Assembly: GCA_033442325.1 (NCBI GenBank)
Contig: JAWQFM010000022.1
Location: 1,150,531-1,161,396 of the forward strand
Source of the DNA: Salpingoeca rosetta
Lineage: Eukaryota; Protista; Choanoflagellata
Direction: 5' to 3'
DNA length: 10,866 bases
In this document: positions 3,065-10,866 of the stretch, in pieces
Numbering within the stretch: position 1 is the stretch's first letter
Layout of the letters: every line of letters starts with the position of its first letter
Translations under genes and position numbers: made by a program
The notes under the pieces: model-generated
Databases searched by the model: none
What the model saw: the letters and a program-made list of their open reading frames with translations, nothing else
What the model was told of the DNA's origin: nothing

Positions 3065-4064
3065 ATGAGCAGCGCCTTTGAGTGCCGCAACGCCCGGCCC
3101 GTTGCCCCTTCACCGCCTTCATCGCCAAAGGCACGGAAGAAGAAGCAGACGACCAGCAAGGCCGTCTTCTCGCCTTCCCCCGTCCATTGGTCCACATCAA
3201 CAACAACAACAGCGACAGCAGCCAGAGGCAGCAGCAACAGCTACAACAAGAAGAAGCAAGGTCACAACGGCAGCAGCGCCAACAGCAAGCCAGCACCAGC
3301 AGGTCTCATTGTTGTCAAGCGGAAGAAGAGGTCCACCAGCACCCAGCAACAAACCACCACCAGTGCCCCTTCGCCAGAGCAGGTTCACTCACCGCCCTCA
3401 CCGCTGAGCAGGCCCATTCCCAAGCCATCTTCCACTTACACCACCTCAGCACAGCACCACCAGCAGTTCCAGCAGCAGTGTCACCTCACCACTGCCACTG
3501 CAAGCACCACAGCCGCCGCATCAACAGCGAGGGTTGTTTCCCCAACCGAAACGTCTGCGTTCGTGTCCCTGGAGACCATGCGAAACGCCGGTATTCGCCA
3601 CCCAACACAGCACCACCACAACACCACTGCCACCGCCATGAGTCGCCGTGACAACGCCACAACCAAGCACCAGCAGCAGCACAGCCCAGGCAAGCCCCAC
3701 CACGAGGATGACATGGACGACTGGGTAGAGGCCGAGCTGCGGCAGGTCACCGACCGCATGACATCCGATGTCGCCAACCCATCCAAGACGACGGCAACAG
3801 CGGCGTCCACAGCGGGCAAGGCCGACGTCTCCACCACCGGCAATGGCGACGACAGCGACGAGGAGTTTTCCGATGCCAGCGACGTGCTTCGTCTCGACGC
3901 CACCACCACCACCACCACCATGGCCGAGGCAACAACAACACCAACAGGCAAGACAACGACGACCGCCACAGCAACAACAACAGCCGCCGTGACGTCGCTC
4001 CTGCAAACGCCAACGTCAGGCACCACCAACGTGTGGGCTGCCCGCGCCAACAAGCGTGCTGCGG

Positions 4065-4098
<34 letters not shown>

Positions 4099-4678
4099 TG
4101 GGTCGCCACGCGGGTCTGGCGCCAACAGCCCATATGAGGATCCGAGCAACGAGCGGATCCAGCAGCTGTTGGAGCAGCGGCGGCATGGGGCGTCACCGGC
4201 CATGACGCAACGCGAACACCTGCTCACGTCGCCGTTTGCGCACTTGACCAAGGAGGAGCGCATGGAGCGCGTGGTGAAGCAGGTGCACTTCTACTTTGGT
4301 GACCGGAACTACCCGACGGACAAGTTTCTTCGCAAGCAGGCGAAGAAGTCTGCAAACGGGTGGGTGCCGCTCTCCGTCGTGTGCACGTACAAGAAGATGA
4401 AGAAGATCACAGACGACGTGCCGCTCATGGCGGAGGCCCTCAAGCACTCGGATGTGGTGGAGGTGAACGACGAAGGCACAGCCATTCGCCGGCGCAACCC
4501 GCCGCCAAAGTTCCACCCCGAGGCCATTTGCGCCGCAACGGTGGTCGTCACGTTTGTCAACCCGAGAAAGGTGGACCACGCACGTGCGCAGGAGATTATC
4601 ACCGCCGCCCTCAACCCGTTTGGCCGCATTGTTCAGATCAGGAAGGTCGACACCTACGAAGACGTCCCAGGTGTGTTG

Positions 4679-4736
<58 letters not shown>

Positions 4737-5956
4737 ACTTTTGTGTGTGTGCACTTTTGTGTGTGTGCACTTTTGTGTGTGTGCACTTTTGTGTGTGTGT
4801 GTGTGTGCACCTTGTTTTGTGCACATGCCCATTCCACTTGGATGCACAGCGCTGCAAGCACTCTTCCGCCCACCACCTCCCATCGCTCACCTCATTCCTC
4901 CTCCTCCTCCTCCTTCTTATTCCTCCTCCTTATTCCTCCTCCCCACCAACATTACCTTTGGATGCAGATGAGGTGACGCACTTCTATACGAAGATGCTGA
5001 ACAGCGCCATTCCCGCCAACCTCCTCAACACCTCCCGCGGGCCACGGTACCTCGTGGAGTACGACTATGCCGACGAGGCCCTTGATGCCGCCACGGAGCA
5101 GGACGGCCGCGCCTCTGTCTTCCACCGCACCCTCGGCAACCTGCACATTGCCCTGCTGTACAAGCGCCGCAAGCAGCGTGGCGGCGACGCCTCGGGCAGC
5201 AACCGCTCCAGCGCCGTGCAGACCCCGATGAGCGCGTCCACGTCGCGCGCGCACACGCCCGTGATGTTCCAGCAGATGCCGCGCCAGGGCCACCAGCACC
5301 ACCAGCCGCAGGGCAGCCGGCCACAGCGCGGGTGGGAGGCGCTTGCTGCAGCAGGAGGCGCCAACACGACGACCACAACCACCACAACGACACCGGGCAC
5401 CGCCACGGCGAGGCGGAGCAAAGGCGGCTCACCAGGCCGCAGCAGCAGCGTGGGGCGGGCGCGCGCGTCGTCGCTGGACAACAAGACGGCCCGGGCCATG
5501 CAACAGCAGTACCTGTCGCACGTGGACTCGACGGTGCCGACGCCGCCATCGCAGAGCAGGGGTGGCCGGCAGATGAGCCGCACCCCGGACCCGGCGCAGA
5601 TGCGGCGGCACCGCGCGCACACGGTGGACTCTGCCACGGGCCGCCGCAATGCCATGCAGAAGCGCTCCCCGCTCGGCAAGAGCATCACCAACCTCAACGA
5701 GAGTGGTGGCAGTGGCGGCAGCGGCAGCAACAGCTGGCGCAGCGGGGACCACACGGCTGCTCTGCTTGGAACCCCGCCATCCATGGGAGGCACGACGCAG
5801 ACGGGCGGGAGTGGCCGGTCCAGCCCAGGGTCCTCGCCGCTCAAGTTCTCCCACTCACCGCTCGCCAAGGCCGGCAGTGCCGACAAGCTCGTGGCAGCAC
5901 ACTCCGCACCCCGTGCAGCAGGTACATCATTGGTGTTCCTGTGTGTGCGCGCATTT

Positions 5957-6019
<63 letters not shown>

Positions 6020-7386: not shown

Positions 7387-8667
7387 TTAGTCCCTGTTCT
7401 TGTTCTTGCCACCACGAAGCAGACCGGTACGGCGGGCAGCGACGAGACCAACCTGGAGGGACACGAAACGAAGGAGAAAACAAAAGGCAAAACGAAACGG
7501 GCCGCCATGCGTGAGCGTATCAGCAGTGAAACAAGGCAAGCAAAGCAATTGTTCTGGTGCCAAACACGTGCGAGACATTGGCAGCGTCACACGTATGCAC
7601 GCGTATGCACACATACACATACACACGCCGGGCAATCGCAATCGCAATCGCAATCACCACCACGACCGCAGCCAGCACTGACAACCGACGACGAGAACGC
7701 ACCTTGCGGCCAGGGGGAGTGGCGCGAGCCACAGTCGAGGGGTGGCCAATATGCTGATGGTTACCACCACCGTGGGGATGCTCAACTGGGTTCATGGCAA
7801 CACCACGGACACGGGGCCAGCAGTTGCGCTTGGCAGAGTACTTGTACTTGGCGTTACCGGCCTTGAGGAGGGGCTTGTCGATACGACCACCACCGGCAAC
7901 GAGGCCAATCATGGCACGGCATGTGGAGGGCATCGTCTTCTTGGTGCCAGAGGGCAGCTTGACACGGGTCTTGTTGGCGTCCGTGTTGTGGGCGATGATG
8001 GTGGCGTAGTTACCAGAGGCACGGGCGAGGTTGCCGCGGGAGCCGGGCTTCTGCTCGAGGTTGCAGATGATGGTACCCTCGGGCATCTCGCCAATGGGGA
8101 GGACGTTGCCGACGGTCAGCTTTGCCTTGCGGCCGCAGTAGATGAACTGGCCAGTGTGCATGCCCTCGGCGCAGATGAACAGCTCCTTGCGAAGCTTGAA
8201 GCGGTAAGGGTCACGGAACACAACCGTGGCAAGAGGGGCACCACGGCCAGGGTCATGGATGACTGGCAAGTGCAGACGGTGGGGGTGCGGGAGGCAGAGA
8301 AGAAGTGAGACTTTGTGCGCATGGGCTTGAAAGTGTGGCAACACGTAGTTGTGTCAACAAGGGGCGGGGAACATCGCTTTTGCAACTGTCCCTGATGTGG
8401 GCTTGTTTCTCACAAGCCGAATCACCTCATCCCGTTGTCACAGTCGCTCCCTCTCTCGCAGCCCCCTTCTGTTTGAATCGCTTCTTATCATCCCGCACAC
8501 AAGGACACATGGGCATCAAACTCACTGTCCTTGACGAGGCCCTTGATGTAGCCCTGGCGCTCGGAGAAGTCGAGCGTGCGAAGCTTGGCAGCGCCCTTGC
8601 GGTGCTTCGTGTGTGCGCGGAAGACGGATCCGCGACCCTTACGCTGAACGCGAATAACGCGACCCAT
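7387..8667 (-). CDS. RPL8: 60S ribosomal protein uL2 (L8); exons 8667-8526, 8262-7703, 7452-7387 (255 aa)
   Basis: Spliced translation: [59 protein letters not shown]...[25 protein letters not shown]...[25 protein letters not shown]. This is clearly eukaryotic uL2. Introns 8525-8263 (GTGAGT..CCAG, phase 1) and 7702-7453 (GTGCGT..CCAG, phase 0). Confidence 0.97.
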
Positions 8668-9251
8668 CTACACACACCCAAAGAAAAACAGGAGGGCACG
8701 GAAGCAAGAGGAGAGCAACGTGTGAGTGCATGTGTGAGTGACTGAGAGTGTGCGTGCCCGTTGGTGGTGCGCTGTGCAGTGTGCGCGTGACGGACGTGAA
8801 CAGCACACCCACACGCCTGACACACTCGGCACACAGAATCACACGCAGCGGTGCTGTTGGTGTGAAGGGACGGTGTGGCTGGTGGAGTCACTTGCTGGCT
8901 GGTGTGTCTCATCTCCGCTGCTGGTGAAGCGTTTATCTCCGTTCGCGTGGGGACAGGCACTGGCGGCTTTTCACGTGCGCTGTGCGGGTGATGGCTGGCT
9001 GGGGCTGTGCTGGCTCACTCGCTGCTCACAGCTGTTGCGGTTCTCCCCATCAACACACGACGACCGCACGCACACACGCACACACGCACACACGCACACA
9101 CGCACGCACACGAACACACATATAAACACACACGCATCCCCCGCTTCCTTCCCCCCCCCCCTTTTCCTCCACTCAACACACACACCCACACCACGGGCAC
9201 ACAGGCACACCCGCACGATGCCGCTTGGCGCATGCGCCGATATCCACTCAC
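8668..9251 (-). other. Probable RPL8 5'-UTR intron (584 nt)
   Basis: A pyrimidine tract and TAG sit immediately before the ATG (TGTAG|ATG). There is a consensus donor AGG|GTGAGT at 9251 followed by GT-rich sequence. An additional internal exon cannot be excluded. Confidence 0.68.
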
Positions 9252-9287
9252 CCTGCTGGTGGTTGGTTTGGCTGCACGCGAGGTGGT

Positions 9288-9298
9288 GAGGAAAAAGG
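9288..9298 (-). promoter_or_regulatory. TCT-initiator / 5'TOP-like pyrimidine tract CCTTTTTCCTC at the presumed RPL8 transcription start
   Basis: 11 uninterrupted pyrimidines matching YC(+1)TYTYY, about 45 nt upstream of the first donor. This architecture is typical of ribosomal protein genes. Confidence 0.55.
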
Positions 9299-9470
9299 CA
9301 CGGCGTGCTCTCTCTAATGTGAATCCAGTTGAAAATTGGCGAAAGATCGCTTTACATAGAGTGCACAAATTCGCTGACTCGACAAAAAATCACCCAGCCT
9401 CGCTGTCGCCGGACACAGGCCGAAGACAAAAGAGTTGTTGTTGTGCCACACGACCGCTGGTCTCTGCTGT
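9299..9470. promoter_or_regulatory. Compact bidirectional promoter region between RPL8 and TRMT11
   Basis: Head-to-head genes with under 240 nt between the RPL8 TOP-like tract and the TRMT11 ATG; locally A/T-richer and free of microsatellites. Confidence 0.5.
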
Positions 9471-9539
9471 ATGTTTCCACGACTGCTGCGACTGTTGCGA
9501 CTGCTGCGACTGCTGCGACTGCTGCTGTTGGTGCGATGA
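9471..9539 (+). other. Upstream [25 protein letters not shown] built from a CGACTGCTG 9-mer repeat; its stop overlaps the TRMT11 start (ATGA)
   Basis: ATG at 9471 and TGA at 9537-9539; the main ATG is at 9536-9538. The ORF is directly visible, but its translation is not demonstrated. Confidence 0.5.
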
Positions 9540-10437
9540 GGCTGTTGGGGTCGGTGCTGAAGCGCCCGCTGCCAGAGGGCGACCGGTGGCGTAGATATGT
9601 GATTGAGTTTGTGGACTCTCGTCGCGACTTTCGCCTGGCTGAGATCAAGGCCGTCGCAGAGGTGCTCAACGTCAACTGGGTCCTGCACGATGACAACTAC
9701 GACGACGAGGTATGTGAGTGTGTGAGTGTGCGTGTGTGTGGATGTGTGTGAGTGTGCGTGTGTGTGTGTGTGTGCGTGCGTGTGGGTGTGTGTGTGTGTA
9801 TGTGTGTGTGTGGATATGTGTGCATGTCTGAACGCATGTGTATGTTATGTGCGTGTAAATCATACGAGTGTGTGCGTGTGCGTGTAAATGCATACGAGTG
9901 TGTGTGTACATGAAGTCTATTCTGGTGTGCATGTGCATTTGCGAACGCATGTACTCTCGTTTGCCTTTTCCGCATGCCCCACATCTGATCATTGTTTGTC
10001 ACTGCTCTGGTTTCCTCCTACTCCTGCTCCACTCTCCTTTTTCTTTGCATCACTTGCAGACACTGCATGTGGTGGCAGACTTTGATGGCCCGGAGAGTGT
10101 GATGGTGGATGTGGCGGAACGGTCCATGCTTGTGCGCTACATTGCCGTGCTCTGGGGCTGGGGAACAGACTGGACATCATGCATGCAACACATTAACCAC
10201 GACGCCCTGGTAAATCGATCGACGCTTAGGGTGGTGAAAACCGCCACGCACATGCCCCTTGGGGGGAGGGGGCCAAGAGACGAGATCAGCAAGCCTTGCA
10301 GTGTGTCTGTGTGAGTGTGTACATGTGTGTGCATGTGTGTGTGTGTATGTCTGTGTCTGCGTGCGTGTGTACATGTGTCTGCGTGTGTGTGCTGTGTCTG
10401 TGTGTGTGTGTGTGTGTCTGTCTGTCTGTGTGTGCAT

Positions 10438-10475
<38 letters not shown>

Positions 10476-10629
10476 CGCTCCGATCCCACGTGGATGTTCT
10501 GCCAAGCGTGGGCTGCTCACCGTGCACTATTTTTCCCATGACAGGCACCATACAGGAAAGGTACATTCAAGTGCGACTTTATGTCTCGCTGTCGTAGAAT
10601 AACTTCCTCTCGTCGCAAGAAGATCTTTG

Positions 10630-10631
<2 letters not shown>
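9536..10631 (+). CDS. TRMT11: tRNA (guanine(10)-N2)-methyltransferase, 3'-partial; exons 9536-9709, 10060-10209, 10545-10631, continuing beyond the window
   Basis: Matches to the human TRMT11 N-terminal THUMP region, from memory: [21 protein letters not shown] ~ RYLLLMAQEHLEFRLPEIKSL; [18 protein letters not shown] ~ LMKRTVCAKSIFELWGHG; [12 protein letters not shown] ~ VPFLHSDSTYKI. All introns are phase 0 GT-AG (9710-10059, 10210-10544, 10632->). The SAM-binding domain is not in the window. Confidence 0.85.
9712..9907. repeat. Degenerate GT-rich microsatellite, TRMT11 intron 1
   Basis: Directly visible. Confidence 0.85.
10301..10474. repeat. Degenerate GT-rich microsatellite, TRMT11 intron 2
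   Basis: Directly visible. Confidence 0.85.

Positions 10632-10697
<66 letters not shown>
10632..10697. repeat. (GT)33 starting at the donor of TRMT11 intron 3
   Basis: Directly visible. Confidence 0.95.

Positions 10698-10699
<2 letters not shown>

Positions 10700-10820: not shown

Positions 10821-10826
<6 letters not shown>

Positions 10827-10862
<36 letters not shown>
10827..10862. repeat. (CA)18 in TRMT11 intron 3
   Basis: Directly visible. Confidence 0.95.
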
Positions 10863-10865
<3 letters not shown>

Positions 10866-10866
10866 T

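Follow-up and report, generated by a model that had tools for sequence, protein, structure and literature searches.

The RPL8/TRMT11 locus and its transcripts

The DNA analyzed here (the window, a stretch of 10,866 nucleotides from Salpingoeca rosetta) carries the beginning of a gene on the plus strand that we assign by protein similarity to TRMT11, and the first exon of RPL8 on the minus strand. A short upstream open reading frame (uORF), built largely on a tandem repeat, lies in the TRMT11 leader and runs into the main start codon. The features to which the text refers are:

9252–9283, minus strand: non-coding first exon of RPL8, 32 nt, RNA starting CCUC... (RNA reads)
9284–9448, no strand assigned: putative promoter region shared by RPL8 and TRMT11, ~165 bp (placed between the two RNA ends)
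9449–9470, plus strand: TRMT11 leader before the upstream ATG (contig end at 9449, stranded read start in the bin 9445–9464)
9471–9539, plus strand: uORF of 22 codons and a stop (sequence reading, translation and codon list)
9480–9536, plus strand: tandem repeat of CGACTGCTG (Tandem Repeats Finder)
9536–9709, plus strand: TRMT11 coding exon 1, 58 codons, MRLLGSVLK... (57% identity to the N-terminus of P0024)
10060–10209, plus strand: TRMT11 exon 2 (64% identity to P0024)
10545–10631, plus strand: TRMT11 exon 3 (52% identity to P0024)

Protein searches and comparisons of TRMT11 were run exon by exon, with no spliced protein. Compared in this way, seven exons are colinear with P0024, a EukProt transcriptome protein, at 52–84% identity. 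An exhaustive protein search with the last exon (L004:6751-6924) gave 23 matches, which led to orthologs, and the full-length matches to this exon carry PF01170. By protein, P0024 is the closest relative, followed by P0006, P0026 and P0025. Both P0024 and P0006 carry PF25904 (Trm11 N-terminal) and PF01170 (UPF0020 methyltransferase), and a word search with P0006 returned proteins with this same pair of domains, the animal members of which are named tRNA (guanine(10)-N2)-methyltransferase TRMT11. Directly after the end of the window at 10866, the central part of TRMT11, with most of its methyltransferase core, is masked by a run of 3916 N (L004:1397-5312), and the C-terminal exons lie beyond this run. 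When the whole genome was searched for PF01170, just two loci were found, neither of them TRMT11; we attribute the lack of a match at this locus to the position of the catalytic core within the N run. Pfam searches of single exons and stop-free stretches of the window found no TRMT11 family above threshold, a word search with exon 1 gave zero candidates, and no Trm11 chain was found in the PDB when exon 1, two C-terminal stretches and full-length P0006 served as sequence queries. Judged by the colinearity with P0024 and by the presence of PF25904 and PF01170 in its relatives, the downstream gene is the predicted ortholog of TRMT11, the tRNA m2G10 methyltransferase, as a first-pass annotation of this DNA had proposed.

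P0024 begins MMRLLG... and aligns from its residue 2 with the MRLLG... encoded at 9536. Because the closest relative begins with the same residues, we take the ATG at 9536 as the main start codon. An N-terminal extension of TRMT11 was considered and discarded: the main frame contains no ATG between the 5' end of the mRNA and 9536, and P0024 starts alike. Exon 1 is followed by a GT donor at 9710, and position 9709 is joined to the start of exon 2 in all four RNA runs. The TRMT11 introns begin with long (GT)n-rich runs (9713–9812, 10301–10474, 10632–10698 and 10823–10862), and (CA)n closes the window. Among protist TRMT11 orthologs, P0004 (711 aa) and P0027 (640 aa; L056:48-1970) carry a C-terminal fusion to an AlkB-like 2OG-Fe(II) oxygenase domain (PF13532), so that one chain combines a tRNA methyltransferase with a dioxygenase.

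The start of the TRMT11 transcript was placed by aligning the raw reads of two stranded RNA-seq runs, together with two older contig sets, to positions 9125–9712. Sense coverage (first mate on the minus strand) begins in the bin 9445–9464 in the two 2026 runs, and a 2011 contig spans 9449–9709 without a difference and continues into exon 2. The 5' end thus lies at about 9445–9449 or slightly upstream, a coverage edge rather than a mapped cap site, and the leader is ~90 nt long. Since both the spliced RNA contig and the reads reach ~9445–9449, the upstream ATG (uATG) at 9471 is present on the mature mRNA; it is the first AUG of that mRNA, ~22–26 nt from the 5' end. Sense depth at 9465–9484 was 2.65 and 4.6 in the two runs, and over the rest of exon 1 it was 23–31 (run X22) and 7–15 (run X21); the main start site is possibly a few bases nearer the uATG. 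Loose read ends were absent from the 5' edge, which set aside spliced-leader trans-splicing. The first-pass annotation had named a transcription start downstream of 9471 as fatal to its own proposal; the RNA reads over 9125–9712 show no pile-up of read starts downstream of that position, and the transcripts begin upstream of it.

The structure of the RPL8 5' end was also visible in RNA. About 400 reads link the patch at 9252–9283 to the reverse complement of the RPL8 start, and splicing out of an intron from 9251 to 8668 (GT...AG) leaves this 32-nt exon immediately before the ATG at 8667. The patch has no second copy in the genome, and many RNA molecules end at 9283. We considered whether the pile of reads on it was a foreign abundant RNA and rejected this, as the unmatched part of the reads is the RPL8 start. 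After splicing, the RPL8 start codon has A at −3 and G at +4, and the CCUC... start of the mRNA is similar to the terminal oligopyrimidine tract with which ribosomal-protein mRNAs of animals begin. Because RPL8 RNA ends at 9283 and TRMT11 coverage begins at ~9445, the two genes are divergent, with ends ~165 bp apart. Farther upstream, a gene with a La domain (LARP-like) occupies 3065–5960 on the plus strand; it has long Thr-, Gln- and Ala-rich low-complexity runs, and Pfam La was matched by 4190–4669 with E = 5.6e-23.

The upstream frame and the tandem repeat beneath it

Positions 9471–9539 read ATG TTT CCA, (CGA CTG YTG)x5, CTG TTG GTG CGA TGA. The 22 sense codons comprise six for Arg, all of them CGA, twelve for Leu (10 CTG and 2 TTG), and one each for Met, Phe, Pro and Val. 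The terminal TGA (9537–9539) shares two bases with the main ATG (9536–9538), so that stop and start together read ATGA. The frame differs from that of TRMT11 and stops at the main AUG, the arrangement of an overlapping uORF, and between 9449 and 9538 there are just two ATGs, at 9471 and 9536. CGA is a rare codon locally, accounting for 1 of 131 Arg codons in the neighboring exons of the window, where CTG is the most used Leu codon (62 of 121). On all of these points the first-pass annotation was right: its sequence and codon counts were reproduced exactly, as were the stop/start overlap and the scarcity of CGA in nearby coding exons.

Two features of the frame were compared with chance. When the leader was shuffled by mononucleotide (n = 20,000), 58% of the shuffled leaders contained a uATG, and in 12.6% of the 20,000 the first uORF ended exactly in ATGA; given that frequency, the ATGA overlap is unremarkable. 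The uATG has U at both −3 and +4, and the main ATG at 9536 has G at −3. By the general eukaryotic start-context rule, the two U residues make the uATG a weak site, and its short distance from the cap makes it weaker still; low use of the uATG is predicted on both counts. The (RLL)n peptide was also considered as a mitochondrial presequence and rejected, since its frame is not that of the main ORF and is closed ahead of it.

The codon content of the uORF follows from a tandem repeat. Tandem Repeats Finder described the CGACTGCTG array with a period of 9, 5.1 copies and 94% matches at 9480–9525, and a reading with an 18-nt period carries it to 9536, up to the main ATG. The array thus consists of ~5 clean copies (9480–9525) and a degenerate tail. 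With 94% matches, it looks young. Every CGA codon of the uORF (6 of 6) lies inside this one array, and because of this the codon bias represents one event copied rather than six choices. The array is also stop-free in all three plus-strand frames, which read RLL, DCC or TAA, so that any upstream ATG would give an extreme apparent bias. For these two reasons, the single array and the three open frames, the statistical weight of the codon bias is small.

Repeats of this type are common in the genome, at ~40 other places. A 27-mer pattern allowing up to 3 mismatches matched 46 times genome-wide and its reversed control 6 times, and BLAST with the repeat found 10 other matching stretches at ~7 distinct genomic sites. 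The array has the head-to-tail copies of a tandem repeat, and the same unit type occurs at many loci; like the genome's other CAG/CTG-derived 9-bp microsatellites, it is built as NNN-CTG-CTG (CAG-CAG-NNN on the other strand) in copies of high purity. It differs from them in position, since it occupies a 5' leader and borders a start codon, whereas the copies sampled elsewhere fall within long open frames, where they read as low-complexity QQS or ATA runs. The last exon of TRMT11 has a 9-bp repeat of this type too, on the opposite strand (L004:7027-7053; G000:C22:1167027-1167053), read as (QQA)n within an acidic, Gln-rich tail.

RNA reads of another expressed locus cross-map onto the array at 9480–9536. 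An apparent C>T at 9504 was seen in reads of which 25 of 26 had the opposite orientation and were cross-mapped from another locus; since nearly all came from other-locus reads on the repeat, we rejected the change as a local variant or RNA edit. Indels in the array were absent from the four RNA read and contig sets, which possibly all derive from one culture lineage.

CGA decoding, leader structure and known relatives of the uORF

The proposal under scrutiny, that of the first-pass annotation, was that ribosome speed on the Arg/Leu run reports tRNA supply or modification and tunes TRMT11 synthesis in the manner of an attenuator leader peptide. Part of this argument was taken from slow decoding of CGA. 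In yeast, CGA is the sole codon read via I:A wobble, which is the basis of its slow decoding, and in yeast reporters uORF variants bearing CGA were the most repressive and were relieved by the matching tRNA (Lin et al. 2019, PMC6755093). S. rosetta has a gene for tRNA-Arg(TCG), at G000:C5:426847-426919, which scored 65.2 bits and has a T run downstream (covariance search and ARAGORN). CGA is consequently neither a wobble-only codon nor one missing its cognate, and because a Watson-Crick decoder, tRNA-Arg(UCG), exists here, the yeast argument does not transfer; slow decoding of CGA, as the first pass had assumed it, is left unsupported. The other tRNA-Arg genes comprise at least five Arg(ACG), one Arg(CCG) and one Arg(CCT). 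The census scored 63 of 498 tRNA candidates, and tRNA-Arg(UCG) was seen once among these. With a single Arg(UCG) gene against at least five for Arg(ACG), a low supply of tRNA-Arg(UCG) is possible, and the six CGA codons could still be slow. The tRNA-Arg(UCG) carries G at position 10; because most tRNAs do so, this gives no specific link to TRMT11.

The second part of the argument, the likeness to an attenuator, was examined by folding. The leader RNA 9449–9560 has a minimum free energy of −34 kcal/mol; shuffled sequences average −35.7 (z = 0.52). As the leader folds no better than shuffled sequences, no attenuator-like hairpin is predicted in 9449–9560, and the alternative RNA hairpins of a bacterial-type attenuator were not found; the analogy drawn by the first pass lacks a structure to support it. 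The bacterial leader peptides trpL, hisL and leuL do share with the uORF a run of particular amino-acid codons in a short leader ORF. They differ in requiring that translation be coupled to transcription and that alternative terminator hairpins form; neither applies to a nuclear eukaryotic gene.

Eukaryotic systems offer other parallels. The fungal arginine attenuator peptide (arg-2/CPA1) and other conserved-peptide uORFs are likewise short uORFs, of which translation could stall ribosomes and reduce initiation at the main ORF when a metabolite is sensed. In contrast to the TRMT11 case, arg-2/CPA1-type uORFs encode a conserved nascent peptide and sense free arginine; the TRMT11 uORF encodes a low-complexity (RLL)n peptide, and its downstream gene is no enzyme of an Arg or Leu pathway. 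The yeast YAP1 uORF library (PMC6755093) likewise places CGA codons inside a short uORF, although without overlap of the main AUG and, unlike S. rosetta with its tRNA-Arg(UCG) gene, with CGA read by I:A wobble. The best fit is with the eukaryotic out-of-frame overlapping uORFs, which start at an AUG in the leader, run in a different frame and stop no earlier than the main AUG, and which are expected to capture scanning ribosomes with little reinitiation. From these the predicted TRMT11 uORF differs in nothing specific; it is an ordinary instance, made by a tandem repeat.

Comparison with orthologous leaders covered the DNA of two distant TRMT11 orthologs, one on an RNA-like contig (L056, with a 47-nt leader) and one on a metagenome contig (L057). 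The ~45 nt ahead of the start contain no ATG in either, which is weak evidence. The sequence header of P0024 places its ORF at nt 73–1479 of the contig, with 72 nt before it, and a word search with the N-terminal part of P0024 matched P0024 itself and nothing else. The literature searched yielded no uORF or ribosome-profiling work on this organism, no paper linking TRMT11 to a uORF of its own, and no natural autoregulatory uORF of a tRNA-modifying enzyme.

Origin and likely effect of the uORF

These data lead us to conclude that the TRMT11 uORF is probably incidental, a mildly repressive overlapping uORF made by a common 9-bp repeat in a short leader. Under this explanation, a CTG/CAG-type 9-bp repeat sitting in the short TRMT11 leader would reach the start codon, and the AUG at 9471 would read through the stop-free array and end at the first stop, the TGA of ATGA. 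Most 40S subunits would scan through the weak uAUG and initiate at AUG 9536. The minority starting at the uAUG would translate 22 codons and terminate atop the main AUG, where the zero intercistronic distance would mostly prevent reinitiation. The prediction is that TRMT11 synthesis would be lowered constitutively and to a modest degree; some nonsense-mediated decay may accompany this. The all-CGA, CTG-rich content is a by-product of 9-mer copying and gives no sign of a selected sensor. Several points count against an incidental origin. Because uAUGs in leaders are generally selected against, a uAUG that has been retained could be functional; this one is truly on the mature mRNA, and CGA is as rare in the nearby exons as 1 in 131. 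The response of yeast CGA-bearing uORFs to tRNA levels (PMC6755093) also speaks on that side.

One alternative accepts the uORF and dispenses with its codons: selection may have kept it as a fixed damper that holds TRMT11 translation low. A low fixed level could matter to a gene with a 165-bp promoter in common with the highly expressed RPL8, whose start lies ~165 bp away and whose patch reaches a depth of 260–380 compared with 7–30 for TRMT11. Moreover, no other AUG precedes the uAUG on the mRNA, the uORF terminates at the main AUG, and repression is the established general effect of uORFs that overlap a main ORF (compare the abstract of bioRxiv 10.64898/2026.07.14.738309). Set against this are the low use of the uAUG predicted from its weak context and cap proximity, and an array that looks young (94% matches) and belongs to a common neutral type; we consider a selected damper unlikely. 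It is also conceivable, though very improbable, that the uORF is largely irrelevant because most transcripts begin at or after the uATG or because the uAUG is too near the cap, with the coverage edge at 9445–9449 marking a minor start site. The rise in depth that follows 9465–9484 would fit a main start at ~9450–9465, but RNA-seq depth always tapers over the first ~100 nt of a transcript. Furthermore, an independent contig from 2011 ends at 9449, both 2026 runs begin in the bin 9445–9464, and read starts do not accumulate downstream of 9471.

The tRNA sensor of the first pass, in which the Arg(CGA)/Leu run gauges tRNA supply or m2G10 and slow ribosomes over the main AUG tune TRMT11, appears to us extremely unlikely. 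It can draw on the presence of the uORF on the mRNA, on the local rarity of CGA, on a tRNA-Arg(UCG) with G10 seen as a single gene among the 63 of 498 candidates scored, and on the dosage response of yeast CGA-bearing uORFs to tRNA (PMC6755093). These points are outweighed in our assessment by the origin of the bias in one copied repeat unit and by the Watson-Crick decoder that CGA has here, unlike in yeast. The Leu part of the run should be fast, as CTG is used more than any other Leu codon (62 of 121); G10 is common to most tRNAs and confers no specificity; the leader fold is not unusual; and no paper on a TRMT11 uORF was found. Loss of Trm11 alone is not known to cause a strong decoding phenotype in yeast, which also counts against a sensor. 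A related scenario, to which we assign a similarly minute probability, is co-option: the uORF would have been born of the repeat, its six CGA codons would depend on a single-copy tRNA-Arg(UCG) that is itself a G10-bearing substrate of TRMT11, and shortage or undermodification of that tRNA would slow ribosomes over the main AUG, giving the enzyme translational feedback from the tRNA pool. If co-option were true, the uORF would be a natural counterpart of the engineered yeast CGA uORFs; a sensor, if real, would be the first natural case of a tRNA-modification enzyme reading the tRNA pool via its own leader, in a close relative of animals.

What stands of the first-pass interpretation is the identity of TRMT11, its start at 9536, the presence of the uORF on the mRNA and the rarity of CGA; tRNA sensing, slow CGA decoding, an efficient uATG and an attenuator fold are left unsupported. 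In particular, the step from codon bias to tRNA sensing lacks support, as a repeat type found genome-wide, with a 9-bp unit, yields that bias automatically. The analysis fixes the local gene structure, with the start codon and 5' end of TRMT11 and the first exon and start site of RPL8. On present evidence its value is mostly that of a caution: once a leader contains a tandem repeat, an open frame whose codon bias is extreme follows automatically, and for that reason such bias is in itself no evidence of selection.
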